DNA of 64,000 bases from Zygnema circumcarinatum SAG 698-1b (Eukaryota > Plantae > Zygnematophyceae), in contig CM074818.1 in NCBI GenBank assembly GCA_037447605.1, positions 756,617 to 820,616 of the forward strand. Direction: 5' to 3'. Under the pieces are notes generated by a model that saw only the letters and a list, made by a program, of their open reading frames with translations, made no database searches and was not told where the DNA came from. A program made the translations under genes and the position numbers. Within the stretch, counting starts at the first letter, position 1. The number at the start of each line of letters is the position of its first letter. This document shows positions 16,991-63,415 of this stretch, in pieces.

Positions 16991-18840
16991 ATGGCGGCAA
17001 ATGCCGTCGTGTTGCGGGACGAGATTTTTTATGTGGCGGAGGAGCAGTAAGTAGAGGGAGGGGGGATAGGGAGAGAGAGACCAGGAGAGTGAGGGAGAGT
17101 GGGAGGGATAGAGGAGGAGGGGAGGGAAGGAGGGAGGCGGAGAGAGAAAGAGGGATAGGAGGGACGGACGGAAAGCAAAAAAAATAATTATAATTGAAAA
17201 TATAATTTCAGGATCTGTTTCAGGGTTCAACTTCCGGTTCATGTGCGTAAAAAAAAATTAGGAACGGGTTGGAATGTTGTATTTAGGGTTTGCATTGCAA
17301 CTGAGAATGCAATGGTGTTGAATGCAGAGTCGAAAGAGTCATATTTGGAGCAGGCGGCGATGGCGAACGCAACTTAACCATGGAGGAAGAGCAAGACCTG
17401 CAAGGTCAAAATGATTGTACCAGCACTGACATGAGGAGATATAAGTGTCTAATCTTTTTGAACAAAGTAACACGGAATGTAAATAGAATATGCGAAATTC
17501 AACCTTTTCGAATTGGAGCAAGTGGACTAGCTGGAGAATGTCTGTCATGGTTCCATTACCAATTCCATATACGTTGGGCGAAGTTGAAGCTTTCAAAATG
17601 AAATGCGTGAACTTGCTATTGATATGTTTTTGAAGGAGAATGCAGAAATTTATGACAAAGTTCATCAGGCCAAAGACCACATCTGGAATTACATGCAGTT
17701 GGGATCGTTCGTTCTGTTCACAACTCTGTACATCGTGGTTTTGTATTTGCAAGCGAACTCATTACTCACTTACGAGATTTCTACTTCTCATCAAGCCCTA
17801 CTTCCTCCGGTGAGAATTTCCTCACATGCTTCGCCGATATTCACAGGGTATTATTTTCGGAATTTTTTTTCTGTCTCTTTCTTTCTGTCAATACCCTTGT
17901 CCTTTTGCAACTCCCTTGGCTCCCTCTCACTGGTCTGCCACGCCTCCCTCTTTCCCTCTCCTTTCCTTGTCATGTCATCTTTCTCTCTCCTTACTTCATA
18001 TGGCAATGGAAACCATATACTCCTTCAATTTTTTAGTAAGATCCTTGGAAACCCTGAACAGCTACATATCAAACATTTGACCAGTCGAGAAAACCTCGAA
18101 TCTTCACTGTCATGCATGAAGGCTGGATGATGCACCAGAAGGAGTTATTGCTCTTCAGGCTTATAACTTGGGGAGGTGGAAGTGACTTGGGAGGGGAAGG
18201 TGGCGTAAATCCTAATGTCAACCTTTTTTTTATTCATTGAGTGTACGGTATGAAGTAGTTTACGGTGTCTGCTTGCAGGGCGCAAGTGGAACTGTTCCAG
18301 TCATATTTTCCGACGGCCCTTCCGAAATATACGATTGGCTAAATGAATCGTTCATTCAGGTTTGCTGGATCTTTTCTCCCTCTTTCCCTCTTAATTTTTT
18401 TCCCTACATGTGTTTTTCTATCGTCCTTTGTGATACGCATAGACTCGTTTTTTATCTTTTATTCTCTGGGGACTTGAGGATTGATGAGATTCTAAGATGA
18501 GTTACGTGGGCACGAGCTGCAAGATCAAGATTCGACTGGCAAAGATTAGGGTTGGGTCTGCATGATTAGATTTGGCGTGTCATATTTTGACTATTGAAGT
18601 TCCTGAAATGTGTGGGTTTGGCGTGCAGACGGTGTGGGCGGATCCATTATGCGGCAACGGCATCTGCGAGTCGCCGACGGAGCACGTACAGTTCGGACGG
18701 TTTGGCTGTTTGGCGGACTGCGGCAAGTTCGCGAACACAACAAGGGTCGTGCTCAGCCTCTCTAACGACTTCGCGTCGCCGCAGGAGCAGGCTGCCACCT
18801 CATGGAACCTCTGCATGTCGCGCCCCGTCGGGCTCTGCTG
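16991..18840 (+). pseudogene. Partial paralogue (exons 1-5) of the PKD2-like gene at 47238; truncated or cut by the assembly gap
   Basis: Exons 16991-17046, 17328-17404, 17646-17809, 18279-18359, 18629-18840 keep an open frame and match exons 1-5 of the full copy (S1 helix, LCGNGICESPTEH..FGRFGCLADC). Followed by CT repeats and a 100-N gap at 19662-19761. Confidence 0.8.
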
Positions 18841-19761
18841 GTGAGGCTGCTACTCGTCAACCCTGCTGCAGGGAGTCAGAGCAAGTAGAAAGAATGTGTG
18901 GATTGGACTAGAGTTATTACGGGAATGTGTTTCAAAATTTCGTTGAGCTGCGGACAGATTTGGAACTTCTATTCACCGCGACCTACTCTCCCCTATCTCC
19001 TTCCCCGCTCTCTCAGCTCTTTTGATCTTTCCCGTATCTCTCTCTCTCTTTTTTGTTCCTCTTTCTCTCCCTATCCAGCTCTCCTCGCTCACTTCCTTTT
19101 CCTCTCCCCTCGTCCAGTCCTCCCCTTCTCCTCTCCCTTGCCCTCTTCCCGTTCTCCCCTCTCCCTCTCCAACTTATTATCATTTTCCCCTCTCCCCTCG
19201 CCTTCGCCCCACGCCCCTAGCCCTCCACCCTTCTCCCATCTCTCCATCTCTCTCTCCCCTCTCCCCTCTCCCCTCTCCCCTCTCCCCTCTCCCGTCTCCC
19301 CTCTCCCCTCTCCCCTCTCCCCTCTCCCCTCTCCCCTCTCCCTCTCCCTCTCCCTCTCCCTCTCCCTCTCCCTCTCCCCTCCCCTCTCCCCTCTCCCCTC
19401 TCCCCTCTCCCCTCTCCCCTCTCCCTCTCCCCTCTCCCCTCTCCCCTCTCCCTCTTCCCTCTTCCTCTTCCCTCTTCCCTCTTCCTCGTCCCTCGTCCCT
19501 CTTCCCTCTTCTTCCCTCTTCCCTCTTCCCTCGTCCCTCGTCCCTCGTCCCTCGTCCCTCGTCCCTCGTCCCTCGTCCCTCGTCCCTCGTCCCTCTTCCC
19601 TCTTCCCTCTTCCCTCTTCCATCGTCCCTCGTCCCTCGTCCCTCGTCCCTCGTCCCTCGTCNNNNNNNNNNNNNNNNNNNNNNNNNNNNNNNNNNNNNNN
19701 NNNNNNNNNNNNNNNNNNNNNNNNNNNNNNNNNNNNNNNNNNNNNNNNNNNNNNNNNNNNN

Positions 19762-19975
19762 AAGCTCCTCCTGAGAGTTCTCCCTCTCTCCGAGCTGCAC
19801 AACGTGCCTGCGCGTCTCCTTCAGGATTTCCTTCGCCTCATTCTTTAGTCCCTACACCAAAGCTTCCAACGAGCTGCAAAGGCGAAACCACAAAAAATCT
19901 CAAGCTTAAACAATGACTTACCAGGCAAAGCAACGTACAAATATGAAGAGAACACAACTCTTCAGGTGTAGCCTC
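19762..19975 (-). pseudogene. Inverted fragment of PKD2-like exon 25 plus preceding intron, frameshifted
   Basis: Reverse strand reads tttgcag|LVGSFGVGTK then, after a frameshift, NEAKEILKETRRHVVQLGERENSQEEL, matching VVGSFGFEGPENEAKESVKETRGHVVKLGEREYSPEEL at 62052-62165; the intron matches ~61960-62051. Confidence 0.85.
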
Positions 19976-19984
19976 AAAATCTTT

Positions 19985-21013
19985 CTCGTTGGTTGGTTGG
20001 ACCCTGCCAACCATTGCCAATGGTTGGCAAAGCGGCCACTCAACAATGAAGATCCACTAACATTGTTGTTGTTGTTGCCTTCGGCTACGCAAATCTCTTA
20101 TCAAACTACTGATTGGCTCTACGCAAGCAGCAGATCCACCATTCTTTACAACCCATTCCTCAAGCTCCATGATCCATCCATATCACCTGTCCATCGCAGT
20201 CCTGATCTCTCATCATCAGAAGTAATTGAGCGACTCTTTGTTCCGGGACTCTTTGCCTCAAAATCTTTCTCCTTGGTTGGTTGGACCCAGCCCACCATTG
20301 CCGATGTTTGCCAACCATTGGCAATGGTTGGCTGGGTCGCCAGGGCATGCCCTGGCATGGCATCGCATCGCATCGCATCGGCATGGGGAAAATCCATCAC
20401 AGGCCCATATTTCAAAGTTCATATGTCGTCGATGTTTGCATGTGGGCCCCACGGAGCCATGTTGGGGCACATGGGCGTGGACCGAACACGTTGTGGATGG
20501 GCGGGCAATGGAACCAAGGAGGAGTGTGTGCATGAGAGCAAGGGGGGCGGGTCATGGGGTAGCATTCCCATGATGGGGTAGCATGCACATGATAGGGTAG
20601 CATGTCCACGATGGGGTACCATGCCTTGGAGCGGCCGGTTTAGAGGATGACATGAGGGTAGCGAATTGAAAAAGATTCAAAGAGATAAATCCTGAACTTT
20701 AAATCCTCCAACCAAGGCAGAAGGTTATGAACCAAAGTTGAAAAGGGAGCAACACTGCTGGCAAAATAAATATAAATGGGTTTGTGTGTGTGAGTTTTCA
20801 CATCACTTTCATATACAAACCCCTAAGCATCCTAAAGCCTGATTCACCTCTACTCATGTGTAGAGTGGAGTGCATTCCACAGATCGAGGGGGCTCCGTGA
20901 CATAAAATTTACAAATTAGGGTTCAACCTGAACCCTGAACCCTGAACCTTGAACCCTGAACCTGAAAAATTTGAGACCCATAGGGCCATTGCGGCTGAAA
21001 CGGAAAATGTGGT

Positions 21014-43364: not shown

Positions 43365-43985
43365 CATCTCGCAGTCTTTCTGTCAATATAGTATCGGATA
43401 CAATATCTGGTTTTCCGGTATAGTGATAGGTTGTTTCATTAGTTCTATTAGGGGGTGTCAGACTTAACAAAATCTTACGAAAAGCGTTACGAAAAAAAAG
43501 GTTACGAAAGTACTCCGCCGCAGGAGGATCGCGATTATACTGGAGTACTCGTTCTGATGTCAAACTTACGAACACGCGTACTGAATTTTTTTAAGTCTGA
43601 CACCCCCTATTGAGCGATATTCTTTGTGCTTTGTCTGAACGAGATTATAGGGTTTTCTCATCATTGCGAGTTTCGAAGCTTTTGGGGATTCAAGTTGGAG
43701 GCTATTTTGTATTTTTTCTCACATTTCTGAAGTTTTTAGGGTTGCTGAATCTCACAATATATATTTTGAAGGGCTACTCTTGACCAGGACATACTGTTCC
43801 ATGCAAACGGACGTTTTCTCAAAAAAAAAAAAATCGTCGGTTATATACACGTCCTTGCCTGTTCTCCTCCCCCCTGCCGTCCTTTTTTACCTTTCTACTC
43901 TCTATTTTTTTACTCTCCCACGCTCTTTCACTCTCTCTCACGCTTTCTCACTCTCTTCCTCGCTCTCCCTCCCTCTCTCGCCCCT
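43365..43985 (+). repeat. Displaced copy of PKD2-like intron 23 sequence
   Basis: Matches ~61118-61560 (catctcgcag..ctgtcaata..gtatcggat..ccggtatagtgatag..ttgaccaggac..tatacacgtcc) with no flanking exons. Confidence 0.75.
43450..43608. mobile_element. 159-bp PIF/Harbinger-type MITE
   Basis: TIRs AGGGGGTGTCAGACTTAA; 3-bp TSD ATT (43447-43449, 43609-43611); empty site visible at ~61196-61205 (agttctattcggcg). Confidence 0.8.
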
Positions 43986-46864: not shown

Positions 46865-47170
46865 TGCACGGCACCGCAACCGGGGAGCGCGGAAGATGTT
46901 TTGTCGCGATGCGCGTCACACGCGCCCAAGCGCGAAAAATGTTTTGTCGTGTTTGGCCTCACATCCCTTGGCCCAGCGCGGAAGATGTTTTGTCGCGATG
47001 CGCGTCACACGCGCCCAAGCGCAGAAAATGTTTTGTCGTGTTCGGCGTCACACCCCTTGGCCCAGCGCGGAAGATGTTTTGTCGCGATGCACGTCACACG
47101 CGCCCAAGCTGGGCACGGAAAGTGTTTTGTCGTGTTGCGCGTCACACTCCCCCTTTGGCCAAGCGCGGAT
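46865..47170. repeat. CpG-rich tandem repeat (~90-bp unit of two ~45-bp halves) immediately upstream of the channel gene
   Basis: Repeats of cccagcgcggaagatgttttgtcgcgatgcgcgtcacacgcgcccaagcgc...; the TTGGCCCAGCGCGGAA core also occurs upstream of the paralogue (~16665). Confidence 0.75.
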
Positions 47171-47237
47171 GTTCCTGCTTTCCCACTCCTCACTCAACCT
47201 CTCCCTCTCCTCGCCTTCGCCCTCCCCTCCTGCAGCC

Positions 47238-50200
47238 ATGGCGGTGCAGGACGTCGTGATGCGAGACGAGCTTCTTTATGTGGCGGAGGAGAAGTAAGTA
47301 GAGGGAGGGGGGATAGGAGAGAGGGACCGGGAGAGTGAGGGAGAGAGGGAGGGATATATTGAAAAGGGGAGAGAAGGAGGGAGGCGGAGAGAGAGTGAGA
47401 GGAAGGGATAGAGAAGGGGAGGGAAGGAGGGAGGCGGAGAGCGAGGGAGGAGGGATAGAGGAGGGGAGGGAAGGAGGGAGGCGGAGAGTGCGAGAGGGAG
47501 GGATAGAAGAGGGGAGGGAAGGAGGGAGGCGGCGAGAGAGAGAGGGAGGGATAGAAGAGGAGGGGAGGGAAGCAGGGAGGAGGAGAGAGGGAGAGAGAAA
47601 GAGATAGAGGAGGGGAGGGAAGGAGGGAGGCGGAGAGAGAGAAAGAGGGAGGGATAGAGGAGGGAGGAAGGAAGGAGGGAGGCGGAGAGAGAGAGAGGGA
47701 GAGATGGAGGAGGGGAGGGAAGGAGGGAGGCGGAGAGAGAGAGAAAGGAAGGGATAGAGGAGAGGAGGGAAGGAGGGAGGCGGAGAGAGAGGGAGGGAGG
47801 GATAGAGGAGGATGGGAGGGAAGGTGGGAGGCGGAGAGAGAGAAAGTGGGAGGGATAGAAGAGGAGGGGAGGGAAGGAGGACGGTGGAGAGAGATAGAGG
47901 GAGGGATAGAAAAGGAGGGGAGGACAGGAAGGAGGCGGAGAGAGAGAGAGGAAGGGATAGAGGAGGAGAAGGGGGATGGAGGGAGGCGGAGAGAGAGAGA
48001 GTTAGGGATAGAGGAGGAGGGGAGGGAAGGAGGGAGGTGGAGAGAGAGAGAGAGGAAGGGATAGAGAAGGGGAGGGAAGGAGGGAGGCGGAGAGAGAGAG
48101 AGAGTGAGTGATAGAGGAGGGGAGGGAAGGAGGGAAGCGGACAGAGAGAGAGGAAGGGATAGAGGAGAAGGGGAGGGAAGAAGGGAGGCGGAGAGAGAGA
48201 GAGGAAGGGATAGAGGAGAAGGAGGGAGGCGGAGCGGAGAGAGAGAGAGAGAGAGAGGGAGGGAGGGAGTGAGGCAGAGACGGAGCGAGGAGGGATAGAG
48301 GAGGAAGGGAAGGAAGGAGGGAGGCGGAGAGCGAGAGAGAGAGGGAAGGATAGAGGAGGAGGGGGGGGGAGCGGGGAGGCGGAGAGATAGAGAGGGAGGG
48401 ATAGAGGAGGGGAGGGAAGGAGGGAGGCGGAGAGCGAGAGAGAGAGGGAAGGATAGAGGAGGAGGGGGGGGGAGCGGGGAGGCGGAGATAGAGGGGAGGG
48501 ATAGAGGAGGGGGGGAGGCGGAGGGAGGTGGAGAGAGAGAGAGGGAGGGATAGAGGAGGGGAGGGAAGGAGGAAGGCGGAGAGAGAGAGAGAGGAGGGAT
48601 AGAGGAGGGGGAGGGAGGGAGGGATAGAGGAGGGGAGGGAAGGGGGGAGGCGGAAAGTGAGAGAAAGGAAGGGATAAAGGAGGAGGGGTGGAAGGAGGGA
48701 GGCGGAGAGAGAAAGAGGAAGGGATAGAGGAGGGGAGGGAAGGAGGGAGGCGGAGAGAGAGAGAAAGGAAGGGATAGAGGAGGAGGGGATGGAAGGAGGG
48801 AGGCGAAGAGAGAGCGAGAAAGGGATAGATGAGGGGAGGGAAGGAGGGAGGCGGAGAGAGAGAGAGAGAGGGAGGGATAGAGGAGGGGAGGGAAGAGGGA
48901 GGCGGAGAGAGAGAGAGAGGGAAGGATAGAGGAGGAGGGGAGGGAAGGCAGGAGGCGGAGAGCAAGAGAGAGGGAGGGATAGAGGAGGGGAGGGAAGGAG
49001 AGAGGCTGAAAGAGAGAGAGGGATAGATAGAGGAGGGGAGGGAAGGAGGGAGGTGGAGAGGGAGAGAGAGGGAAGGATAGAGGAGGAGGGGAGGGAAGGC
49101 AGGAGGCGGAGAGAAAGACAAAAAGAGAAGGATAGAGGGGGGGGAGGGGGGTTGCGGAGAGATAGAGATTGAGGGATAGAGGAGGGGAGGGAAGAAGGGA
49201 GGCGGAGAGAGAGAGAGAGGAAGGGATAGAGAGGAAGGGAGGGAAGGAGGGAGGCGAAGAAAGAGAGAGGAAGGGATAGAGGAGGAGGGGAGGGAAGAAA
49301 GAAGGCGGAGAGAGAGAGAGAGGAAGGGATATAGGAGAGGAGGGAATGAGGGAGGCGGAGAGTGAGAAAGAGGGAGGGATAGAAGAGGGGGAAAGGGAGG
49401 GAGGGAGGCAGAGAGAGAGAGAGAGGAGGTATAGAGAGGGAGGGGAGGGAAGGAGGGAGGCGGAGAGAGAGAGAAAGGAAGGGATAGAGGAGGAGCGGAT
49501 GGAAGGAGGGAGGCGGAGAGAGAGAGGAGAAGGGATAGAGGAGGAGGGGAGGGAAGGAGGGAGGCGGAGAGAGAGAGAGAGAGAGATCGATAGAGGAGGA
49601 GGGTAGGGAAGGACGGAGGCGGGGAGATAGAGTGAGGGAGGGATAGAGGAGGGGAGGGAGGGAGGGAGGGAGGCGGAGAGAGAGAGAGAGGGAGGGATAG
49701 AGGAGGAGGGGAGGGAAGGAGAGAGGCGAAGAGTGAGAGAGGGAGGGATAGAGAATGGGAGGGAAGGAGTGATTTGGAGAGAGAGAGAGAGAGGGAGATG
49801 AGGGACGGATGGAAAGCAAAAAGAAATATAAATCGAAAATTTAATTTCAGGATCTTTTTCAAGGTTCAACTTACGTTTCATGTGTATGGGAAAATATTTG
49901 GAACGGGTTGGAATGTCGTGTTTAGGGTTTTCATTGCAGCTGAGAATGCGATGGTGTTGAATGCAGAGTCATATTCGATACAGGCGGCGATGGCGAACTT
50001 AATGTTACCATGGAGGAAAAGCATCACCTGCAAGGTGAAAATGATTGTGCTAGAAATTACATGAGGAGATATGAATATCTATTCTGTGTGTTCAAAGGAA
50101 CACGGAATGTAAATAAAACATGCAAAATTCGACCTTTTCCCATTGGAGCAAGTGGACTTGCTGGAGAATGTCTGTCGTGGTCCATTTCCAATCCCAAATA

Positions 50201-53200
50201 CGTTGGGCTAAGTTGAAGCTTTCAATATGTAATGTGGGAACTTGCTACTGATAGGTTTTTGAGGTGAATGCAGAAATTTATGAAAAAATTCATCAGGCTA
50301 ACAACCACATTTGCAAGTACGTTGAGTTGGGATCGTTCGTCCTGTTCACGGCTCTGTACATCACGGTGTTGTACTTGCAAGCGAACTCATTTCTCACTTA
50401 TGAGATTTCTACTTCTCATGAAGCCTTGCTTCCGCCGGTGAGAATTTTCTCACATGCGTCGCCGGCACTTACAGGGTATTAGGGTTGCAGCTTTCTCCCT
50501 GTCTCTTACTCTCTCAATACTCTTCTCCTTTTGCAACTTCCTTGGCTCCCTTTCACTAGTCTGGTCTGTCAGACGGGGAGAGAGAGTGGTAGCATGCATT
50601 TCTTGCTTTCCTTAAGTTAAGAGTGATTACTAGAGTTACAGTACAGGCGCCCTTCCTTGCTATCGGCGGTCACCGCGGTTACCGTACAGGCGCCCTTCTT
50701 TGCTCGCGGCTGTCACCGCGGTCACCGCTGTCGACGGCGGCGAGCCAGCCCGGCAGCCGTACTGCACGTGGCATCGAGCGGAAATAATGGATTCTTAGAA
50801 ACCCTAAACGGCTACACATGAAACATTTTACCGTTCGAGAAGCATGCACCATAGGAGTTATTCCTCTTCAGTCTTGTAACTTGGGGAGGTGGAAGTGACT
50901 CGGGAGGAGAAGGCGGCGTAAATCCTAATGTGAACCGTTTTCTTTATTCATTGAGTGTACGGTATGAAGATGTTTAAGGTGTATGCTTGCAGGGCGCAAG
51001 CGGGACTGCTCCAGTCATATTTTCCAACGGCCCTTTTGACATATACGGTTGGCTAAATGACTCGTTCATTCAGGTTTGCTGAATCATTCTCTCCTTTTCC
51101 CTTGTTATTTTTCCGCTTTTTCTATCGTCCTTTGTTATACGCATAGACTCCTTTTTTATCATTTATCCTTTGCGGAATTTAGGGTTGATGAGATCCTACG
51201 ATGAGTTACGTGCGTGAGAGCTGCAAGATCAGGATTCGACCGGCAAGATTAGGTTGGGTCGGCATGATTAGGGTTGGCGTGTCATATTTTGATTATGAAG
51301 TTCCTGAAATGTGCGGGTTTGTCTTGCAGACGGTGTGGGCGGACCCATTGTGCGGCAACGGCATCTGCGAGTCCCCGACGGAGCACGAACAGTTCGGACG
51401 GTTTGGCTGTTTGGCGGACTGCGGCAAGTTCGCGAACACAACAAGGGTCGTGCTCAGCCTCTCTAACGACTTCACGTCGCCGCAGGAGCAGGCGGCTGCC
51501 TCATGGAACCTCTGCATGTTGCTCCCCGTCGGGCTCTGCTGGTGAGGCCTGCTGCTCTTCAACACTGCTGCAGGGAGTCCGAGCAAGTAGAAAGAATGTG
51601 TGGATTGTACTAGTTTCATTGCGAGAGTGTGCTCCAAAATTTCTTTCAATTGCGAACAGATTTGGTAAATCTATTCACCGTGATCTACTCTCTCCTCTCT
51701 CGTTCCCCGCTCTCTCAGCTCTCTAAGCAGTTTTTATCTTTCCCATATCCCTCTATCTTTCCTCTTCCTCTTTCTTTCACCCTCCTCTTCTCGCTCACTT
51801 TCTTTCCCTCGCCCCTCTTCCTCTCCTTCTCCCCTCGTCCCCTCCTTTGCCCTCTTCCTGTTCTCCCCTCTCCCTCTCCCTCTTTTTATCCGTTACCCCT
51901 CTCCCTCTCCCTCGTTTTATCCGTTACCCCTCTCCCCTCTCCCCTCTCCCNNNNNNNNNNCCCCTCTCCCCTCTCCCCTCTCCCCTCTCCCCTTCGGCCT
52001 CTCCCTCGCTCACTCTTCCCTCCATATTCATCTCCGATGAAGAGCTGCACCATTCATATCTTAAGTACACCCCTAACCGTTTATGTGCACCCCTGAGTTC
52101 TGAATGTTTTGCCTTCTCGGCCATTGGGCACTACAATATAGCGAAGCTGTATAACCCTTTGAAGAGTGCAAGGCAGTGTTTTCAACCAACGCTCAAAAAG
52201 ACAGTCGAAGAAATCCTTATCTTGGGGCCTTAGAGTTCCTTGACTTTACTTCCCCAGGTATTCAAGTGACCAGGTCTTTTTGGAGCTCCATCAGGAAAAC
52301 AACGAGATCCAATTGGACCTCCCTGATGGCGACTGGAAGCTTCAGCTCAATGCACCCTCGGGAGGAGTGAAGGGGCAGATCACCATGGCGGGCAATGAGA
52401 CGGATCTGCTCCGTTTTGGAGGCTGCAATGAGACTCAGCCGCTGTTCGATGCATGCAGAGAAGTAGGCACCTGTCCTTCTTAAGGGATTTTAGGGTTTCC
52501 TGCTTTTTAGGGTTTGGTACTTCAGTGACCTCGAGGAACATATTTTTAGGGTTTGCAGAATGTGAGGGGAGAGGAGAGAAGTGGAGTGTTCCACTTTGTG
52601 TCAGTACAGTTGGAACTGACAATCAGCTAAAGATTGTGTTTGTAACCTGTGTTGTGTAACGCCAATGCGAAGCTTAGGGTGTTCTTGCGTGTGATAGTGA
52701 AACCGTTGTGAGCGTATTCGTCTTTAACTTCCTGTTTTCCTTGTCCTTGAATACTCAGTTCTCTTATACCTTCTTCAAACTGATAGACTCTGACGATGGC
52801 TTTTTGGTTGTACTTTGAAGGCTTGTGCGTCGATCTCGACATGCATTCAAACATATTGCGAGCCATCAGCTGATTATTCTGGTGACGTGAATCTCACCAT
52901 ATCAGCAGCATTTTTGGACTGTGCCACTGTATGCGCTTCGACTCCTGAAGCACTGTTGAACCTGAACGTGACGTCATGCAGCGACGATGTACGGCTCTCA
53001 ACCCTAAACTCCAAAGCTTTGAGTTTTTTTTTTTTCCAGTTCTTCGGATAATCAGGGAATCAAGAGAATATTTTGAACTGACGTTTCTTTCTTTCGATAT
53101 CCAGAAATGTAGTGTTGACAATTCCATTTTTTATTTTTATCTGTTTGCCTGGGTGGTGTTTACCAGGTTTTGCATTCTGGGAATCATTCGCTCCTCCAAA

Positions 53201-55447
53201 CGGGAACTCTCAATTGCACTTGTTGGTCGCCTTTTCCTTCTTCCCGCTTTTGTCTTTCCCCTTTTTTCTTTTAATCCTCGATGTTCTTAAGCATCATCTG
53301 TGTTAAACTCGTCCATTTAGCCTCTTAGTGCTTCTGCATACCTAGATTTTGCTGGAGCACTCTGAATATTACTTTCTAGTGTTGGAGAAGTTTAGAGTTG
53401 GAGTATTAGTAACCGAGGGAGGCAATGATCCATTTGGAGCAGGGCCAAAAAGTGCTGCTCCTGCACCTCCGCCTGCCCCGTCTTCAACAAGATCAAGTCC
53501 GCCACCTCCAGTCTCACCAGTGAGTGCTCACTCGTTTTTTCCCTCTCACTAACTCTACCCTTCTCTCCCTCTCCCCAGTTCTCTCCTACGTCTCTCACTA
53601 CCGGCTCTCAACATTTGAAAACCCTCAATCCGAAATTCTAACCCTTCTCGGCATACAGACGGCTGGCGGCCGCCGACTCCAGTCCTCCGACGATGAATAC
53701 CTGCAGGAGTGCACGGGTGACTCCTCCCTCCGCCTCCTCCTCCTGAACGCATTCTCTGTCTCCCTTCCTGCCCCTCCCCCAGTCCCTCCCTTCCGACCCC
53801 CGATTCTAACCTCCTTATCTTCTCCCCATTCACCTTCCCTCCCTCCACAGCGGCCGCACCCTCCACATCCGACGCCCAGGATCGCATCTGGTCCGGTCTG
53901 GGCCGCGACGACTTCGAGCGCACGAACCGCATGGAACTGGCCGTGAGGCGCGCAGTCATGACATTGATAAAGGACACGTGTGTTGGGACATATAAATTCT
54001 TCAACAATCATGACACCGATAATATGACAGCCTTCATGAAACTTTACATGGGAGCCTCCAACTTAACAGTTTCGGAGTCTTTCGACTATACTCAATTTAC
54101 AATTGACACCTCAGTATACGGCTTGCTCTCGGCTTTGTACAAGGCACACTCGTGAGTGCGGGAACAGACCACAAAGTTCCAAAAAGCAAGAAACTTAGGC
54201 TTTCTATGAGCCCTCCCACTCGAAAATCCCTAAGATTTTGAGAAACAGCGGAACCTTGGAGCTTTCTAAGTGCTTTCACAACCATTAGAGAACTCGACCA
54301 CTAGAAGACTTTTAAAAGTGAGCTTGTTTGTATTTGCAGCGACGTTCCATTTTTTGGTCAAGATCAAATCAATCGCATTATCGACATCCTTGTTGCAGCC
54401 ATTGCTTCGGTTGGCACCTTCAAAGATAATTATTCGGTAGATCTCGGAAACTGGCTGCATCGCATGGACAATTGTCTCGCAGATTCGTATAAATACACTT
54501 GCCGTGCAGGTGACCTTAAAACATCTGATCAGTTTACTTTGGTTGTTTTTGATTCCTGAATATTTTTTGTCTTTCCAAATTCTTTTTAGTCCTTTAAGTT
54601 GCTCTTAGAATCTATCAGTCGGTTCGGACGACTTTGTACACCTTGTATAAAGGTGGAAATGAATTTTCTACAAATAGGAATTCTAGATTTTAGAGCACGT
54701 TAGATTTTTCATGGATGTGCGTACTTTCTGACGAAAATCTGACAATCAACGTTTTTCCAAAAAATGATTTTTTTTTGCAGCGGATCACATTCTTCCGTGG
54801 TCATCGGGCTCCCAACTGAACACCACCATCTACGTGGGAGATACTGTGGAGTGGGTCTGGTCTGACGACAACCCGCACTCCATAGCAGGTGCTCTCTCTC
54901 TCTCGATCTCCATCTCTCTTTCAGCTCTCTCTTTTACTCCCTCACTCTCTCCCTCGTCCATTCGCTCAGCCTCCCTTTCTCTCTCCCTACTACTCCCCTC
55001 TATTTCTCATCCTCCCTCCCTCCCTCCCGTTTCTTGAGTCTCTCCCTCTCCTTCCCTTCCTCCCTCCGTCCCTTCCTTGCTCCCCCCTTCTCTTTTCGCA
55101 CCCTGCGTATCCTTTCGTCGTCCCTCTCGCCGTGTCCATGCCTCTCTCCCTCCCTTCTCCTCCTTCATCCCTCCCTCCCGTTGCCTTCCTCCCTCCCACC
55201 CTCTCCCGCCATCAACCACTCCCTCCTTTTCCCATCCCTTCCTCCCTCCCTCGCCCATCCAGAGTCGAACAGTTCGAGCCTCACCTTCGGCAACGAGCTT
55301 GACTGGATCTTTGATGGCTTTGGCTCCCGACGTTTTGTGGTTTCGAGAAAGACGAAGTGCTCCCCCGACAACCTTGACGTCTACGGCCTCGTACCTTGCG
55401 TTCTTGGTATGTATGCATGAACGTATGTATGTATGTATGTATGTATG

Positions 55448-55478
<31 letters not shown>

Positions 55479-58400
55479 TGTGCGAACGAGTATGCTAACC
55501 TTATGGTTCCGGAGTCTTCAAGTAATCAGGATTTGGAGTAATTGGAGTCTGAAGGCGCTCAGGTTACTAAGTTATTATTGTGCTGTTTGTAAGCTCGAAA
55601 GGTGGCTACGGTTTTAGAGTGGTTACGTTGTCCTCGGCATAGTTCCAAGCAGAAATGCGAAATCGCTTTGCGCAAGCAATGGTCAGCAATGTGATGCAGG
55701 GGAATCTCTTTCTGATCCGATATATTATGTTGTGGATGTTCTACCCGGCAGAAATTCCATCATCGGAAGACTCTCCCACATTCACATACAGTTACCAGTT
55801 CACTAGTGATGAGTTTCCCGATCTTCCCCGTGTTATTCAGTACTCGTCACGAGGCTATGGCGACTCAAATAACGGATACCTCACTATTCTTGAAAGGCCA
55901 AATAGCCCTCCATGTGAGAACCTAAGAACCTTGAACGACTAAAACCTTTCACATGTTCAGCTTTCTGACGACATATTTCATGTACTTGAAATGGCTCCGC
56001 TTGTCTGCTGAAAGAACATCGCGTTGGACACCTTTCAGCTTGTTCAACCCCTCGTTCTACTCAGAGACCCTTTCATTCTTACAATTTGAAATATTTCCTG
56101 TTCATTTCCTTGCAGATGTTAGCAACAGAACGTATGAAAACTTCGTCCCCATCAATTTCCAGTGCTCCCAGGACTGTACCCTGAGCAAACTGAGCAACGG
56201 CAAATGTGAACCGGAATGCAACAACTACTACTGCGCTTTTGACGGGGGAGACTGTTCCTGCCCTTTGGACGAGAACGGCCTCCCTTCCTGCGCCTGTCCG
56301 GTCGGGCAGACAAGAGGAGACGATGGAGGTAAGAAACCTTAAGAATCTTGAAAACTGCTTAAAGCTTTGGTAACCTTAGAACGGTTCCCCTGTCTCTCTC
56401 CTCTCTCTTTCCTCTCTCCCTCCTTCTCCGCTCTCTCTCCTCCTTCAGTCCTTGTCACGATTCTCTACGTTCCTCAACACCTTTCACTTGCTCTCACTCT
56501 CGTCGTCTCCTCTCTTTTTTTCACTCTTTGTCCCTCTCTCGCCTTCGCCTTCCGTTTTTCGTCTCTTTCTATCTCCTCTCCTCCTCCGCTTTTTCCCTCT
56601 CTCGCTCACTCTTCCACTCTTGCCTTGTCCTCCTTCCTCTTTCCTTCGCCCTCTCTCCCTTCCTTTCCTTCCTCCACTCTTACCGTGAAGCTCCACACTT
56701 ACCCTGTTGCCCGCATTTCTGCAATGCATTAATAGTTGTGTTTTTTTTTTTTTTTTGCTGCAGTGTGCTGTGTGGGAGGAGCCATTGGTTCAGACTTAAA
56801 ATTTACTTTTTCCCTTCGAACCTACGGAGAAAGTTTGTCCGAGTCCAATGCAAATTTTGCTCCCTCAAGTACCACCCCTCTCACTCGCACAGTTGCCATT
56901 CAAAACAGGTAGATATTTAGATTTTCAAGACTCAGAAATCCAGATGCAAACAGCCTGAATACTTGTCATCTCCCAAAATTTCTGTTTCTTTGTTCAGTAT
57001 TCAACGATTCGGTGATTTTGAAGAGTGTCGATCCGTAAACTAGAGAGAAAACTCAATTTGCTGCAGAAAACTCAGTTTTGAGGAGGATTTTCAGGAGGGC
57101 AGAGGGGGGTTAAGAGAAGCAGAGAAGATTTGTTAGGGGGGTGGGAGGGCAAGGAGGGAGGAAGAGGAACAAAAATATATATGTTTTGTTTTTGCGCTGC
57201 AGAGTGGTAATTGGACTACTACTTTCTCACGAGAGGACAAGGGGAGATCTGAAGTGGTGTGACGAGGGAAAGTAAGCAGTTCTATGCTGCCCCTTCTACT
57301 CTTAGTGTGTCTTTGATTTATATAATAATAATTAAAATGTGCTTATGAAATCACTATTAGTATTAAGTGTTATTACTCTTTTCTACCTCCTGGAATCGTA
57401 GAAGCCTTAAAATTCCTCAAAACGTGAGAGCATTCAAGGCCAGCTTGATAAGAATAGAAATTCTAAATCTCTGAAACCCTAATGAAACCCTGAAGTTCGG
57501 GTTTTGAAACTCTCATTTTTTGCTCAGGAACCCTTTATTTGGGGTATCACACCCTAATAACATGCACTGAAACCTTTCCACTTAGCACCATATGTGCTAA
57601 ACGTAGTAAGATAAGTTAGTAGCTATGAAATTTAGAAAAGATAAGAAAATCACAAGTGATTTCTCACAGGTAATCATTTGTAAAGGTCATCTTTGACGCT
57701 CAATATGGAGAATGGTTAAGAGCACACATGGTAGGGGCTAACGTTACGGAAATGATTGCAGAGGTGGCGGTTGCCAGAAAACTAGAAACAACTACCCACG
57801 AAATTATTAAATCAGTGCACCCTCACCAGCTATTACAACAGCTTAGCTTCCTGAAACTTAATAACCGTCAACATAAGATAGGTATACATCTTATTGGTAA
57901 TGAAAGAGAAAAAAGACCGAGTAGACGATTCGTTGCACGCGAAGGAATCACGTTAGAGCAGTGCATCCTTTTTGCTCAAATTTACTACTTTCTGATCGTT
58001 TTGCTCCTGCAGATTCAGCCCAATCACTAAGAATTTGGCCATTTGTAGCAGAAATCTCAACTTGTCATGGGGAGTGGCATCTCCCTTTTTACCGAATTCC
58101 GTTCTTTACAACAGCACATATGCAGACGAGCAGAGCTCCAGATTTCAGGAATTAATGTGTTGTACGGAGGAACGGGAAGCGGAATTTAATCCGAATGGAA
58201 CTCCGTACGGATTTCGACCGGCTGCAATTGAGGTAATTTGTGTCTTTAGGGTTTGTAGGGAAGCAAGATCTTTCAAGCAGATTTTTCCGTATTTCCTAGT
58301 AAATATATGTCATTTCTAGAACCAGATACTTTCATCTTGAGCCTTTGAACCTGTTTGTATCTAGAAAGATGTTAAGCCAAGTTGGAAATTTCGAGATGTG

Positions 58401-61400
58401 CAACAAAATGTAAGCACGTTCAAGAGATTTTTGAAGGACTGTTTTCAAAACCCTGACTTTCAATGAGTTTGGCGACTTTGCAGGGATCTTTTGATTTTGG
58501 ATTCCGTTACATTTTCGACGTAAACTTGGGAAATGAAGCTGCAACGGCACTGCTGCAATACTTGACCGACGGATTCTTTTACGACACTTTTACGGAATCT
58601 GCTTCCGTTCAGCTTCTCACATATAACCGTAAGGCTGCTCGCCAAGATCGCGCAAGAAAAAAATGCTACAGACTCATTTTTTTTGGAATTTTTCCGTTGC
58701 ATATTTGTTTAACGTATCGCTTGAAATAATGACATTTCAGCTGCAATCCTTCTTTTTTATTTGAAACTGATCTTCTCCCTTGCTCTTCCTGAGTGCAGCT
58801 AAGACGAGATTCTTCACACTTACGCAAGTCAAGTTAGACTTTCAATACGGTGGAAAAATTGTGGCATCATCGAACATAGACTCTGTTAAGCTTGAAGTGT
58901 ATTCTAGCACGCAAGACTGGGTGAGGTTAGGGCTAGAAATTGTATTTGTTTTGGGATTAATCTATTCGATTTTCGACGAACTGAGGGAACTCATGAAGGC
59001 GTATTTGACAAGGGGCAATTTTTTGTACCATTTTACGAGCATTTGGAATTATATCGACGCTCTTTCCCTCGGGATTATGACCACCGGAGTCATTCTCTGG
59101 TGAGTTCTATGAGCCCTAATTCTACAGCGCAAAGGTTCACAGAAAGCCTGATGTTGGGGCGGGGAGAGAGAGTGGAGAGAGAAGTACAGAGAGGAGAGAG
59201 AGCCCAAGGACATGACGTGAAGTGGCAGAGAGAAGATTAGGTGATGGTTATGAGATAATACGAAGAGCCTTAGAGTGTGTAAGGACGAGAAATAGGGGTG
59301 GTGAAAATGATTATGGGAGGGGGGAGTGGCAGAGAGTGGGAGTGGGGGAAGGGCGATGAGAAGAAGAAAGTACGAGAAAAGGAAATATGAAAAGTAGTGA
59401 AGTATGGGAGAGCGAGAAAGCAGGTCTGCGAGAAGAGAGAAGAGAGTGAAAGAGAACTGGAAGACGGAAAGAGAGTGATTGCATGGCATTCGGAGGATTT
59501 GGAAACTCAACCTTTTCCATACTACATTCTCTTGCTATAGGGTCTTACTTCTGACTGCCTCTAAAAACCTCCATCTTGCTACTTTCCTTTTCCCTCCTTC
59601 CACTCCTGCCCTCCTCCCTTGTACCCTCTCTGTCACACTCACTCTCTCTTCCTCTCTCCACTTTTCTCTCTTCCCATACCCCCTCCCTCTCTAATTATCT
59701 CCCCCTTCCTCCCTCCATCCCTCTCTCCATCTCTCTCTCATCTCACTCTCTCTCTCTCTCCCTCTCCCACTTCTCACACACTCTCCCTCCCTCCTCATAC
59801 CCAGGTTGAATTATGTATTTAGAAACGCCCGGCGCTTCAATACGAACATCAAGTACAGTATCTACGGAACGGAGCCGGGCCAATTCCTTCAGCTGCTGCC
59901 CGACACGCAGCTGCCCGAAGCCCTGAAAGTTTTCACTGATGTCGAAGAAATCATCTACATCCGCACGTACTATGTGGCCCTGCAGGGCATCAAGTACGAA
60001 CCCTAAAACTCCGAAATCCTAAAACTAAAACCAAGCCCAAGCCCAAGGCCAAACCCCTCAACTCTAAAATCCCAACCGAACTCAACTGTTCGAAACTGAA
60101 AGACTTGACCAAATCAAACCCTAAAACTCGCCTTTTCTTGCTCTTTTTTCGTTTGGGGTAAAATATGAAAATGCAGCATTTTCTTAATGGTTCTCCGCAT
60201 CTTGAAGCTGATGGATTTCCAGCCGCGTATGGGCACTATTACTCGCACCATAGCCGTAGCCTCCATCGATCTCATCCACTTCCTCATAATATTTTCGGTG
60301 ATTTTCCTCGGCTACGCGGTGTACGGTCACGTGGTTTTTGGGCACAATCTTAGGCAGGTGAGTTTGGAAGGGTTCAGAGTTTATGTTTTAAGGGAGTGTT
60401 GGGCTTAAAAGGGTTGAAGGGGTTACAAAGTGGCTTCGGGTTTGTATGGGGTTCTGGGATCTCAGAGGTCTTCAAGGCTTTAAAGGGCGGCTATAACTGA
60501 AAAGTTCGGATTTGTGGGGCAATTGGGTTCTTAGAGGCTGAAGAGAGGGCGAAAGCGAGTGAGGGAGTGGAGTGAGAGAGGGGAAGAGAGTGGGTATGGA
60601 GTGGCGGGGGGGGAGGGGGAAAGGGTGGGGAGTAGCAAAGTAGGATACGAGAGAGAGAGGGAGGGGTAGAGAGTGGGGGGAGGGCGGAAGGGGGACGAGT
60701 GAGAGAGGGGGGGAAGTCAGGAAGTGTCGGAGTGAAGGGTTCAAGAGAGTAAGGGAGAGAGAGACATGGTCACTCCGGAAGTAGCTCTGTAAGCTTCCTT
60801 CACATAGAGCGAATAGAGAAAAGCATGCTCCCACGACCTCTCCCCGTCCCCCTTCCACTACCCCTCTCTCACACCCCACCTCCTCCCCCTGTCCTCCCTC
60901 CTATTGCAGTTCAGCACTCTTGGTCGGTCTCTGATCACCATGTTCAACGTCCTCGTGGGGGATACCTCCGTGTCCGACTACTTTATAGAGCTCAAAGGGT
61001 GGGAGCTGGCAGCGGCCGTACTGCACTGGTGGTCGTATGTGCTCGTAGTGAACTTCATCACTTTCAACCTCCTTATTGCCATCATTATCGAAGCATATAT
61101 GGAAGTCAGGGTAAGAAACATCTCGCAGTTTTTCTGTCAATATGGTATCGGATATCATGTCAGGTTATCCGGTATAGTGATAGTTTGTTTTATAAGTTCT
61201 ATTCGGCGATATTGGTTGTGCTTTGTCTGGACGAGATTTTAGGGTTTTCCCATCATTGCGAGTTGCGAGGCTTTTGGGGATTCAAGTTGGAGGCTCTTTC
61301 GTATTTTTTCTCACATTTCTAAAGTTTTTAGGGGTACTAAATCTCACAATCTTATTGTAGGTTTTTTATATGCTGAAGGGCTTCCCTTGACCAGGACTTA

Positions 61401-63015
61401 TTATTCCATGCAAACGGACGTTTTCTCAATTTTCTTTTTGTATTTTCGTTGGTCATATACACGTCCTTACCTATCCTCCTCCCCCATTCCCTCCCCTTTT
61501 ACCTTTCTTCTCTCTATTTTTTGACTCTCTCTCCCTCTCACGATTTCTCACTCTCTCCCTCCCTCTCTCGCCCATCTGTCTCTCTCTCTCTCTCTCTCCC
61601 TCTCTCTCCCTCTCCCTCCCGCAGAAATACGCGGAAGAGGCCCCCTCCATGCCGGGGGAGGTTTGGTGGATCTTGCGCGCCACGCTGCGCCGCCTCCTCT
61701 TCAGTCCGTACAAAACGGACGCCAAACTCCTCCGCGACCTCCGCCGGCTCGGAGCCAACGACCAGCACAATGTCTCGCAGAGGATTGTGCGTGCTTGCGA
61801 TTTTCCACATAGTTTCAAGTTTTTAGCTTTTGACTTTTGTTCATGCTCGTAACGTTTTTCTGGACTCGAATTCTTTTCTTTCGTCTTTCTGATTTTTTTT
61901 GCTTTTTCCAGGATTTAGGATTTGCGGTTGAGGACGTTCAGTGGTTAGCTGTATAACACCTGAATAATTGTGTTCTCGTCATATTTGTATGTTGCTTTGC
62001 CTGGTAAGTCATTGTTCAAGCTTGAGATTTTTTATGGTTTGGCCTTTGCAGGTTGTAGGAAGCTTTGGTTTCGAGGGACCGGAGAATGAGGCGAAGGAAA
62101 GCGTGAAGGAGACGCGCGGGCACGTTGTGAAGCTCGGAGAGAGGGAGTACTCTCCGGAAGAGCTTTCGAGTCTCTTGATGCGAGCGCAAACAAAAGCGGT
62201 AATTTTTTTTGTTTCAAAGAACAATTGAAGAACAAGTGAAGGAGTTTACTGCGACCTTTGTTATGCATGGCACGCTTTTCTGCTCGTTAAGTCGAGCTGG
62301 GGTGCTTTTGGTTTAATGTGATTTTGAAAATTCACAGAATTTGTGTACAAAAGAACAACTTCAACGAGTCTAAGGAATCCCTATACCTTATAGCCCTTCA
62401 TTTTTTAGTTTGCGCTTTTGGTTGATTTTCCGCTTTTCCTCTCCCCTTCAAACTCTCGCACCGTTTCTTGTTGTCCTTCCATTCGCGTCTATATTCTGAC
62501 CCTTCATCGTTTTCTCTTTCTCTATCTCTCTCTCGCCCTCTCTCGCTCTCCCTCTCCGGCCTTTTTTTGGGTATCTTAAAGCAGGGCATTGCAAGCTCCT
62601 CCAAGCCGGACCATCTCGCGGATGTGATTTTGGAGCAATTCGGAGAACACGTAGCGATTTCGACGGAGAAGCACGGCGATGATATGCAGGAGCTTAAAGT
62701 ATGAAAAATTATAAACCAAACAATTCGAAAGTGCCAGAAATCAGAAAGGCAGAAATGGCAGAAACCACAAACTTCAATGCAGAAATTTTCTTTAGAAAAA
62801 ACTCAAAACCCAAACCCTAAATCCTTAAAATACTCACCACGCTTGAAAGCGTCTTTTTTGGTTTTTTCCAGGAAACCTTGAAAACAGTTATGGCAAGCCT
62901 GCAGATCCAATCCGAGCGACTTGAACGCATGGAGCTCAAGCTTCAATCTGCGACCGTCCCAACGGAAAACGGCACTGCAGAAGATGGAACGGCGGAGGAG
63001 ATTGTCAGAGATTAG
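47238..63015 (+). CDS. PKD2: Polycystin-2 (PKD2/TRPP)-like cation channel with expanded extracellular loop (Cys-rich motif, cupredoxin-like, LNR), 1,433 aa
   Basis: 27 exons, 4302 nt, one open frame: 47238-47293, 49967-50034, 50274-50437, 50993-51073, 51330-51541, 52258-52462, 52821-52988, 53346-53519, 53659-53716, 53851-54151, 54340-54509, 54781-54888, 55263-55406, 55752-55913, 56116-56328, 56764-56908, 57203-57271, 58013-58232, 58484-58628, 58799-59099, 59805-59993, 60177-60357, 60910-61110, 61625-61786, 62052-62198, 62585-62698, 62872-63015. Motifs: S3 SIWNYID, S4-S5 RILKLMDFQPRMGTITRTI, pore FSTLGRSLITMFNVLVGD, S6 FNLLIAIIIEAY. The symbol is a family-level call. Confidence 0.9.
47300..49800. 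repeat. 2.5-kb polypurine minisatellite (~45-bp unit) filling intron 1
   Basis: Almost pure G/A repeats of ggagggatagaggaggggagggaaggagggaggcggagagagag. Confidence 0.92.
57677..57827 (+). pseudogene. lpdA: Bacterial-type dihydrolipoamide dehydrogenase C-terminal fragment (50 codons) inside intron 17
   Basis: Translates FVKVIFDAQYGEWLRAHMVGANVTEMIAEVAVARKLETTTHEIIKSVHPH, the E3 dimerisation-domain pattern ending at the HPHP active-site motif; no flanking E3 sequence. Confidence 0.8.
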
Positions 63016-63169: not shown

Positions 63170-63415
63170 TTTTATTTGGATGGGTCCCGGAACAAGGAGT
63201 CGCTCAATTACTTCTGATGATGAGAGATCAGGGCGATGGGCAGGTGATATGGATGGATCATGAGGAATGGGTTGTAAGGAATGGTGGATAGGTGGTTTGC
63301 GTAGAGCCACAGAGAGGGTGATCAGATATTTGCCTAGCAGAAGAGATCAACAACAACAATGTTAGTGGATCTTCATTGTTGAGTGGACTCTTTGCCTCAA
63401 AATCTTTCTCCTTAT
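63170..63415 (-). repeat. Inverted partial copy of the 20030-20245 repeat
   Basis: Shares gagtcgctcaattacttctgatgatgagagatcagg...caacaacaatgttagtggatcttcattgttgagtgg with the reverse complement of copy 2. Confidence 0.8.

Follow-up and report, generated by a model that had tools for sequence, protein, structure and literature searches.

The window analysed here, a stretch of 64,000 nucleotides from Zygnema circumcarinatum SAG 698-1b (contig CM074818.1, positions 756,617 to 820,616), carries on its forward strand, at 50010-63015, what is apparently a complete and functional gene that encodes a six-helix subunit of a polycystin-2-type (TRPP) cation channel. The predicted gene comprises 26 coding exons, delimited from stop-free frames and GT-AG sites, and combines the channel core, the polycystin (TOP) domain and helix S1 in one chain, with a loop of ~890 residues between helices S1 and S2. 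Approximately 700 of these residues appear to form an insertion within the TOP domain, because the first TOP strand and helix directly follow S1 and the body of the domain starts only at NRVVIGLLLSHER. In order, the insert consists of a Cys-knot and beta-sandwich module, a Pro-rich linker, a probably helical region, a cupredoxin-like fold, a single Lin-12/Notch repeat (LNR) and a Cys-rich stretch. The identity of the gene and this architecture are regarded as close to secure. The best overall explanation, that this is a complete TRPP subunit gene whose matrix-tethered ectodomain would gate a calcium-permeable channel, is considered probable, while the tethered-mechanosensor reading taken by itself, drawn from analogy, is more tentative and falls a little short of an even chance.

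Searches were run exon by exon or on relatives taken from databases. An HMMER scan with the exon carrying S2 and S3 returned 145 relatives among 1.84 billion representatives, many of them with S2 at residue 1,000-1,200, and the best of these, with 48% identity, was a protein of 1,336 amino acids, P0001. The window's own protein is absent from the word-indexed protein collection, in which searches with P0001 and with the alignment A1 gave 9-11 relatives. P0001 is encoded by an uninterrupted 4,011-nt open reading frame (ORF) on Logan contigs of 4.3-4.5 kb from the runs SRR8128907 (L001) and SRR8128902 (L002), and also has a short N-terminus, the cupredoxin-like motif and the LNR; the contigs are read as transcript assemblies, so that this architecture would be transcribed in a relative.

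The assignment to the polycystins is carried by the membrane region. The Pfam family PKD_channel (PF08016) matches the exon of S4 and S5 (E22) at 46.0 bits and the exon of the pore and S6 (E23) at 23.2 bits, against a cut-off of 22.4, and Ion_trans is matched at 25.5 bits, again by exon. Together with the matches of the S2-S3 exon to the structures of PKD2L1 and PKD2, these support the PKD2/TRPP channel that an earlier note on this DNA had proposed. Kyte-Doolittle peaks mark S1, S2, S5 (60177-60357) and S6 (60910-61110), and S3 and S4 were positioned through alignment to PKD2L1 and to the Pfam model. The pore loop reads NVLVGD, the family consensus being LLGD, and may be the counterpart of the L-G-D filter in the structures of PKD2 and PKD2L1; with phmmer this exon reaches PKD2 only weakly (E 0.09). 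For the TOP domain, a profile of the family alignment from just past the LNR to S3, with the window exons included (A4), finds Chlamydomonas MST3 (9B4H chain X) as its best match in PDB at 1.1e-28, with PKD2L1 and PKD2 at 1e-19 to 1e-16. The Pfam family Polycystin_dom is not reached by the single exons of the window and matches the homologous place in P0004, P0056 and other relatives. The body of the domain starts at NRVVIGLLLSHER..C..KF, which spans the 56908/57203 junction; its first elements lie directly after S1, and in Chlamydomonas these are supplied by a separate protein, SIP (PMC11015965, PMC10846610). The exons of the channel, the TOP domain and the C-terminus are as follows.

50274..50437, forward strand: exon of helix S1, with the hydropathy peak LGSFVLFTALYITVLYLQA and tblastn matches to the S1 region of P0001, P0004, P0005 and P0014
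50993..51073, forward strand: first ectodomain strand and helix after S1 (the TOP elements supplied by SIP in Chlamydomonas), from the family alignment A3 and the helix in the model of P0001:58-236
56764-56908, 57203-57271, 58013-58232 and 58484-58628, forward strand: body of the polycystin (TOP) domain in four exons, from the family profile A4
58799..59099, forward strand: end of the TOP domain, S2 and S3, with PDB phmmer matches to PKD2L1 (5z1w, 2e-4) and PKD2 (5t4d, 1e-3) and a hydropathy peak
59805-59993, forward strand: exon of the S3-S4 linker
60177-60357, forward strand: exon of S4 and S5, from Pfam PKD_channel and hydropathy
60910-61110, forward strand: exon of the pore helix, putative filter (LVGD) and S6, from Pfam PKD_channel and hydropathy
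61625-61786, 62052-62198, 62585-62698 and 62872-63015, forward strand: cytoplasmic C-terminal exons, with tblastn matches to P0001 1164-1243 and to P0005 and consistent splice sites and phases

The last of the C-terminal exons is heptad-like (LKTVMASLQIQSERLERMELKL), and no EF-hand was detected by Pfam in these four exons when they were searched singly.

Joined by script, the 26 exons give 4,131 nt, which is 1,376 codons and a stop, without an internal stop; all have AG acceptors and GT donors, and their phases are consistent. Identity to the mRNA-derived relative P0001 reaches 67% exon by exon, with the junctions at contiguous residues. The best-supported start codon is the ATG at 50010 (MEEKHHLQ, joined to EIYEKIHQ...), because it matches the N-terminus of P0001 (MEDRQVLAELY...), and the stop codon occupies 63013-63015.

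50010..50034, forward strand: start-codon exon (MEEKHHLQ and 1 base), with an accATGG context, a GT donor and a phase that fits the next exon

The gene thus extends beyond 61110, where the earlier note had ended it, and its product is 1,376 residues long instead of the 1,433 given there, a figure that probably includes exons further upstream, for which no in-frame junction was found. The ATG at 47238 (MAVQDVVMRDELLYVAEE.), upstream of the start, has no in-frame GT-AG joining to 49931 or 50274 and is therefore treated as 5' untranslated region or as unrelated; the same short ORF is conserved before a partial copy of the gene at 17 kb too. Two further candidates were set aside: an extra exon at 53169-53227, splicing of which to the Pro-rich exon introduces a stop, and a short alternative last exon at 62338, which gave way to 62585-62698 and 62872-63015 because these keep the frame open, with matching GT-AG phases, as far as the stop codon.

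The assembly is interrupted inside the gene, within an intron.

51542..52257, forward strand: intron 5, with GT...AG ends and an assembly gap at 51951-51960 in a CT-rich low-complexity tract

Three observations speak against coding sequence hidden in this gap: first, the codon that spans the intron is TG|G, TGG, and restores a conserved Trp (...PVGLCW-Y...); second, the flanking exons correspond by tblastn to residues 89-161 and 162-230 of P0001, unbroken; and third, the paralogous copy at 18130-19317 aligns with 50844-52022 straight across the gap.

The modules of the insert are encoded by the following exons. The motifs on which the earlier note had built its description (CGNGICE..., the Pro-rich linker, IYVGDTVEWVWSDDNPHSI, FTYSYQF, the LNR and NRVVIGLLLSHER) are all found at the places it had given.

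51330..51541, forward strand: Cys-knot motif exon (W.DP.CGNGICE.P.E...GRFGC.ADCG ... SWNLC), one of the best-conserved parts of the ectodomain in the family
52258..52462, forward strand: exon completing the conserved beta-sandwich (PDG.W...GGV.G), from alignment A3 and the AlphaFold model of the equivalent part of P0001
52821..53716, forward strand: variable linker, made up of a Cys-containing exon (52821-52988), a Pro-rich exon (~53418-53519) and an exon at 53659-53716, from open frames and GT-AG sites
53851-54151 and 54340-54509, forward strand: unassigned, probably helical region in two exons, with 27-30% identity by tblastn to P0001, P0005 and P0014 and a shared conserved start IW..LG
54781-54888, 55263-55406 and 55752-55913, forward strand: plastocyanin-like (cupredoxin-fold) domain in three exons, aligned to the clade (A2), with the fold predicted on P0001
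56116..56328 (E15), forward strand: single LNR followed by a Cys-rich C.CP.GQTR..DG(.CC) stretch, from Pfam PF00066 and PDB phmmer

The exons 50993-51073, 51330-51541 and 52258-52462 form a module that is kept in every branch of the family in alignment A3, which consists of the window exons and 25 relatives, including Edaphochlamys, Bathycoccus and Tetraselmis. Its pattern in the family runs W.DP.CGDG.CE ... GRFGC.ADCG ... SWNLC ... PDG.W ... GGV.G. The branches with this module comprise the chlorophytes, Prasinoderma, the cryptist Palpitomonas and the stramenopile Hondaea. An AlphaFold model of P0001:58-236 consists of a helix, a disulfide-rich loop and a beta-sandwich, with a pLDDT of 80 overall and of ~90-95 in the sandwich. 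No Pfam family matches the Cys-knot exon, and no specific solved relative of the combined Cys-knot and beta-sandwich was found by Foldseek (none below E 0.04) or by VIA, which returned generic sandwiches with Z <=5.5. In the Mesotaenium protein P0004 the Cys-knot module occurs twice in tandem, at residues 171-243 and 291-360, each copy being 53-54% identical to the exon 51330-51541.

In the variable linker, 52890-52985 weakly matches residues 243-274 of P0001 with the Cys positions retained. The Pro-rich exon, 53418-53519, contains an SPPPP motif and Ala-Pro repeats. Linkers rich in Pro and Ser stand at the equivalent position in relatives, and the linker is likely to be extensin-like and hydroxyproline-glycosylated. 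The region that follows, 53851-54509, is probably helical and has no significant match to a Pfam family. Over exons 5-14 as a whole, Pfam likewise returned no significant family.

The three exons at 54781-55913, with IYVGDTVEWVWSDDNPHSI in the first and FTYSYQF in the last, align to 13 relatives (A2). Pfam cupredoxin families (Copper-bind, Cupredoxin_1 and others) give no match at E <=1 in these exons, and none at E <=0.001 in 34 full-length relatives. Nevertheless, a cupredoxin fold is supported by structure prediction, by two independent fold searches and by a weak plastocyanin profile match. AlphaFold of P0001:455-712 with A2 gives a beta core with a pLDDT of ~90 and a less confident inserted loop. 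Foldseek with this model against PDB places plastocyanins, amicyanins, AcoP and laccase domains at the top (E 4.6e-4, TM <=0.71 by target), and the VIA search, which is independent of Foldseek, aligns Chlamydomonas plastocyanin (7zqe_M) first, with Z 9.5 and an rmsd of 2.1 A over 91/98 residues, then two plastocyanins at Z 8.8 and 8.2 and approximately 30 cupredoxins or multicopper-oxidase-type domains. The profile of A2 matches plastocyanin in PDB weakly, at E 0.018, over the G-D-T-V-x-W...P-H region; besides LNR and EGF proteins, its only matches are plastocyanins, amicyanins and one other type-1 blue-copper protein.

Read from A2, the first copper-ligand His (NPHSI) is kept, and in the C-terminal loop YSSRGYGDSNNGY Ser, Gly and Asn replace Cys, His and Met; Closterium P0012 retains a Cys and a Met, not the His. 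The cupredoxin-like fold without its C-terminal Cys, His and Met ligands that the earlier note had described therefore agrees with the P0001 model, both fold searches and the profile match. The domain would share with plastocyanin and amicyanin the eight-stranded Greek-key sandwich and the G-D-T-V-x-W ... P-H motif, and differs from them by an extra loop of ~50 residues bearing two conserved Cys; unlike soluble or GPI-anchored cupredoxins, it is embedded in the loop of a channel. Early nodulin-like proteins, the copper-less phytocyanins of plants, are likewise extracellular and have lost the copper site. No phytocyanin is present among the top fold matches of the P0001 model.

The LNR was identified by Pfam (Notch, PF00066) at 33.4 bits against a cut-off of 21.2 and E 6e-8, over profile positions 3-36 of 36, as the earlier note had read it. 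It runs C-x2-DC-x7-NGKCEPECNNYYCAFDGGDC, with the six Cys and the N-G, C-N-N and D-G-G-D-C positions, and aligns to LNR-A, -B and -C of Notch1. In PDB, phmmer with this exon finds the Notch1 negative regulatory region (NRR) at 5e-6, and also the LNRs of Notch1-3, GNPTAB and PAPP-A, while the Cys-rich tail is weakly like an EGF domain of factor X (E 0.1-0.3).

The modules differ in their distribution among the relatives. Names were looked up for 30 of the 145 relatives, and those found include the streptophyte algae Mesotaenium endlicherianum, several Closterium, Chlorokybus and Mesostigma, the other green algae Prasinoderma, Edaphochlamys, Bathycoccus, Cymbomonas and Tetraselmis, and, outside the green lineage, Palpitomonas and Hondaea. 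Among the 34 full-length relatives searched with Pfam, PKD_channel was found in 32, the LNR in 16 and a cupredoxin family in none. Alignment delimits a clade with the motif G..V.WVW.D..PHS[IL], one LNR and the Cys-rich stretch, to which Mesotaenium, Closterium, transcriptome proteins and the window gene belong; Mesostigma has the LNR (22.6 bits) without this motif. In the chlorophyte type, to which the Chlamydomonas orthologue belongs, the Cys motif is another one, a coiled coil of ~170 residues stands in this place, and Pfam finds no LNR. On these alignments the window gene is placed in the wider green-algal PKD2 family, outside the Chlamydomonas-type subgroup. Its closest family consists of Mesotaenium endlicherianum ME000306S05267 (P0004) and ME000005S08552 (P0033), Closterium proteins such as CAI5470656.1 and GJP79153.1, and P0001. 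In these the modules follow one another as in the window gene, with G..V.WVW.D..PHS[IL], a single LNR and C.CP.GQTR..DG.CC; the proteins differ in length (1,188-1,996 residues) and in that of their linkers.

The predicted LNR and cupredoxin-like layout is, judged from these homologues, a variant of the known PKD2 of green algae that extends through a lineage and is not a one-off. The layout, which the earlier note had suggested looking for in other algae, recurs in Mesotaenium, Closterium and transcriptome proteins and is not unique to the window. That note had also set the long loop against animal PKD2; it is longer than the animal loop, but a giant loop is already the published norm for green-algal PKD2 (1,085 residues, PMC2064795). 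The norm covers the size of the loop, not its contents: a literature search, including PMC2064795, PMC7265326, PMC10846610 and PMC11015965, found no description of an LNR or a cupredoxin in algal polycystins. The Mesotaenium and Closterium homologues are annotated only as hypothetical or unnamed, and no study of them was found in the literature search. The module content of the streptophyte clade thus appears to be undescribed, the LNR being already visible in the precomputed Pfam annotation of the Closterium proteins.

Among studied polycystins the comparison with animals is the simplest. Human PKD2 and PKD2L1 (5T4D, 5MKE, 5Z1W, 6DU8) share the six-helix TRPP core, the TOP domain between S1 and S2 and, probably, the pore helix with a GD filter, but their loop of ~200-220 residues is the TOP domain alone, whereas the algal gene has ~700 more residues with four extra modules. 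Chlamydomonas PKD2 has been studied in more than one respect: Huang et al. 2007 (PMC2064795) reported an atypically long first loop, of 1,085 residues, with cleavage in the C-terminal half of the loop, and Liu et al. 2020 (PMC7265326) showed that the protein, itself attached to the axoneme, serves as the anchor of mastigonemes. The window gene resembles this type (orthologue Edaphochlamys KAG2499695.1, P0057) in the first extracellular loop of ~900-1,085 residues, the TOP body and the pore, and shares with it the Cys-knot and beta-sandwich module after S1, with 44% identity over the Cys-knot exon. In the middle of the loop, however, the Chlamydomonas type has a coiled coil where the clade of the window gene has the cupredoxin-like domain, the LNR and the Cys-rich stretch. 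Only for Chlamydomonas PKD2 has it been shown that the loop is cleaved, that the protein is located in cilia and that it anchors mastigonemes (PMC2064795, PMC7265326).

The two partners of Chlamydomonas PKD2 provide a further comparison. SIP is a single-pass paralogue of the PKD2 N-terminus and is required for processing (Das et al. 2024, PMC10846610). In the mastigoneme structure, the PKD2-like domain of MST3 has no S1 and is completed by SIP; MST3 and SIP form a heteromeric polycystin-like channel with PKD2, and it has been proposed that MST3 and SIP derive from the fragmentation of a PKD2-like gene (PMC11015965). The PKD2-like domain of MST3 is the best solved match to the family TOP profile, and the content of SIP (S1, the first TOP elements and the Cys-knot) is that of the first four coding exons of the window gene. 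By contrast with MST3, which lacks S1 and has a giant N-terminal hydroxyproline-rich ectodomain, and with SIP, a separate single-pass protein, the window gene is an unsplit single chain.

Given this architecture, it is suggested that the ectodomain would act as a binding or tethering platform and not as a redox or proteolysis-guard device. Four subunits would form a calcium-permeable pore with the putative filter LVGD; the cupredoxin without copper and the LNR, presumably stabilised by calcium, would act as rigid modules that bind proteins or glycans, the hydroxyproline-glycosylated Pro-rich linker would be a spacer reaching into the wall or matrix, and the pull or displacement of an extracellular polymer would be passed via the TOP domain to the gate. 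A matrix-tethering role is plausible because PKD2, SIP and MST3 anchor mastigonemes comparably in Chlamydomonas. The earlier note had imagined wall, mechanical or proteolytic signals being coupled to calcium entry, and by analogy with the PKD2-SIP-MST3 complex (PMC7265326, PMC11015965) the mechanical, tethering half of that idea becomes plausible.

Several points nevertheless weigh against the proposal of a matrix-tethered channel. The gene model is a prediction from sequence and relatives, and within it the Pro-rich exon has a single in-phase AG, at 53416-17, so that its acceptor is weak and its start uncertain. The cupredoxin fold was predicted on the relative P0001, which is 27-49% identical over the three aligned exons, and the LNR part of the P0001:455-712 model has a pLDDT of only ~55-60. 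Chlamydomonas PKD2 is without both the LNR and the cupredoxin modules. Finally, relatives occur in Zygnematophyceae, which are not known to have flagella, and the ciliary mastigoneme role is for this reason not simply transferable.

The alternative that survives best, although it is considered unlikely, is that the modules form a scaffold for folding, for assembly of tetramers or of heteromers with SIP- or MST3-like partners and for export, with the channel gated by voltage, calcium or lipids. Such a scaffold would be in keeping with the mutual dependence of SIP, PKD2 and MST3 for processing and ciliary entry in Chlamydomonas (PMC10846610, PMC11015965), with the position of the Cys-knot and beta-sandwich module directly after S1, in the part duplicated by SIP, and with the presence of a SIP-like 5' copy of the channel gene 32 kb upstream. 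However, the cupredoxin-like domain and the LNR are conserved across the Zygnematophyceae homologues, the transcriptome relatives and the window gene, and the LNR is also present in Mesostigma, a conservation that exceeds the needs of a linker or chaperone role.

It is also possible to envisage a mechano-proteolytic switch of the Notch kind, in which the LNR would shield a cleavage site in the loop until force or a ligand exposed it, and a protease would then cut and so activate or release the channel. This is held to be distinctly improbable, more so than a scaffold. The LNR is canonical, and its likeness to Notch extends to the full six-Cys pattern and the conserved Asn and Asp positions in one repeat. 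In the Notch regulatory region, however, three LNRs are wrapped round a heterodimerization (HD) domain and hide the cleavage site, whereas the algal channel has one LNR, and Pfam found no NOD, NODP or other HD-type family in the ectodomain exons of the window or in 34 relatives. The single or paired LNRs of PAPP-A and GNPTAB, which are known as binding or specificity modules and not as protease guards, are closer than Notch to the use of a single LNR in the algal channel. Cleavage does occur in Chlamydomonas PKD2, by a mechanism that is unknown, in the C-terminal half of the loop, which is the half equivalent to that holding the LNR here, and only the fragments enter cilia (PMC2064795, PMC10846610); yet cleavage is known from no other green-algal PKD2, and this one is of the clade that lacks the LNR. 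The protease guard that the earlier note had brought in from Notch is therefore judged unlikely, given the single LNR, the missing HD domain and the cleaved algal PKD2 without an LNR.

A bolder version joins several of these elements: the cupredoxin-like domain and the LNR would together be a calcium-dependent, force-sensitive clamp on the TOP domain, an analogue of the Notch region in the plant lineage, assembled from other parts, that controls cleavage of the loop and through it the opening of the channel, and the copy at 17-19 kb would show SIP-type subunits being born from the 5' ends of PKD2 genes; this is thought slightly less probable again. The least probable reading by some distance, that chance frames were concatenated or that a recent pseudogene lies in a duplicated, gap-rich region, can point to a model built from sequence, to a partial rearranged duplicate and several gaps in the region and to the weak acceptor of the Pro-rich exon, but it is opposed by 26 exons with canonical sites, consistent phases and no stop in 1,376 codons, by exon identity of up to 67% to an mRNA-derived relative with junctions at contiguous residues, and by matches to curated profiles that exceed their cut-offs.

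Flowering plants are held to have no TRP channels, and it is in their closest algal relatives that the ancestral toolkit is still readable. Streptophyte algae keep a PKD2-type channel with an outer loop built unlike that of Chlamydomonas, containing what resembles a recruited copper-less plastocyanin beside a Notch-type repeat predicted to bind calcium. It would be a candidate matrix-tethered mechanosensor in algae that include the Zygnematophyceae, and the copy at 17-19 kb bears on the possible origin of split polycystin partners such as SIP. This is not a new kind of system, given that the giant loop is published and that the same layout is found in public protein sets.

The 5' end of the channel gene is present a second time in the window.

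17052..19317, forward strand: partial paralogous copy of the 5' end of the channel gene, with a start exon, an S1 exon (17648-17809), an exon at 18279-18359 and a Cys-knot exon (18629-18838)

By blastn this copy is 82-84% identical to 49698-52022; its exons are 85-95% and its introns 77-84% identical, and the ORFs and GT-AG sites are kept. Its content is that of Chlamydomonas SIP. The copy runs into a CT-rich tract and then into a gap of 100 N at 19662-19761. On the far side of the gap, duplicates of part of exon 25 (19762-19851) and of 63184-63396 lie on the minus strand (19762-20249). A SIP-like gene of recent origin, a duplicate in decay or an error of scaffolding could each account for the copy at 17-19 kb.

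Further repeats surround the gene. The core of intron 23 (61119-61573) has a 78-88% identical copy at 43365-43973, 17.6 kb upstream, between a neighbouring wall-protein gene and the channel gene, and this is either a dispersed repeat or a relic of the same duplication as the copy at 17-19 kb. Directly upstream of the gene start, at 47300-49800, lies a GA-rich tandem array of 2.5 kb with a GC skew of ~0.9, in which a 212-nt reference has 33 overlapping matches with a start-to-start spacing of mostly 48-51 nt; a shorter GA-rich array precedes the copy at 17 kb, and many introns of the channel gene carry complementary CT-rich tracts. Just before the short ORF MAVQDVVMRDELLYVAEE., four tandem copies of an 89-nt unit, the first two 94% alike, occupy 46886-47200, which may be the promoter or 5' untranslated region of the channel gene. 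Heptamers of the plant-type telomere-like sequence TTTAGGG/CCCTAAA are scattered, singly or in pairs, in introns and flanks, for example at 52480-52550, 58240-58260, 59995-60140 and 61240-61260.

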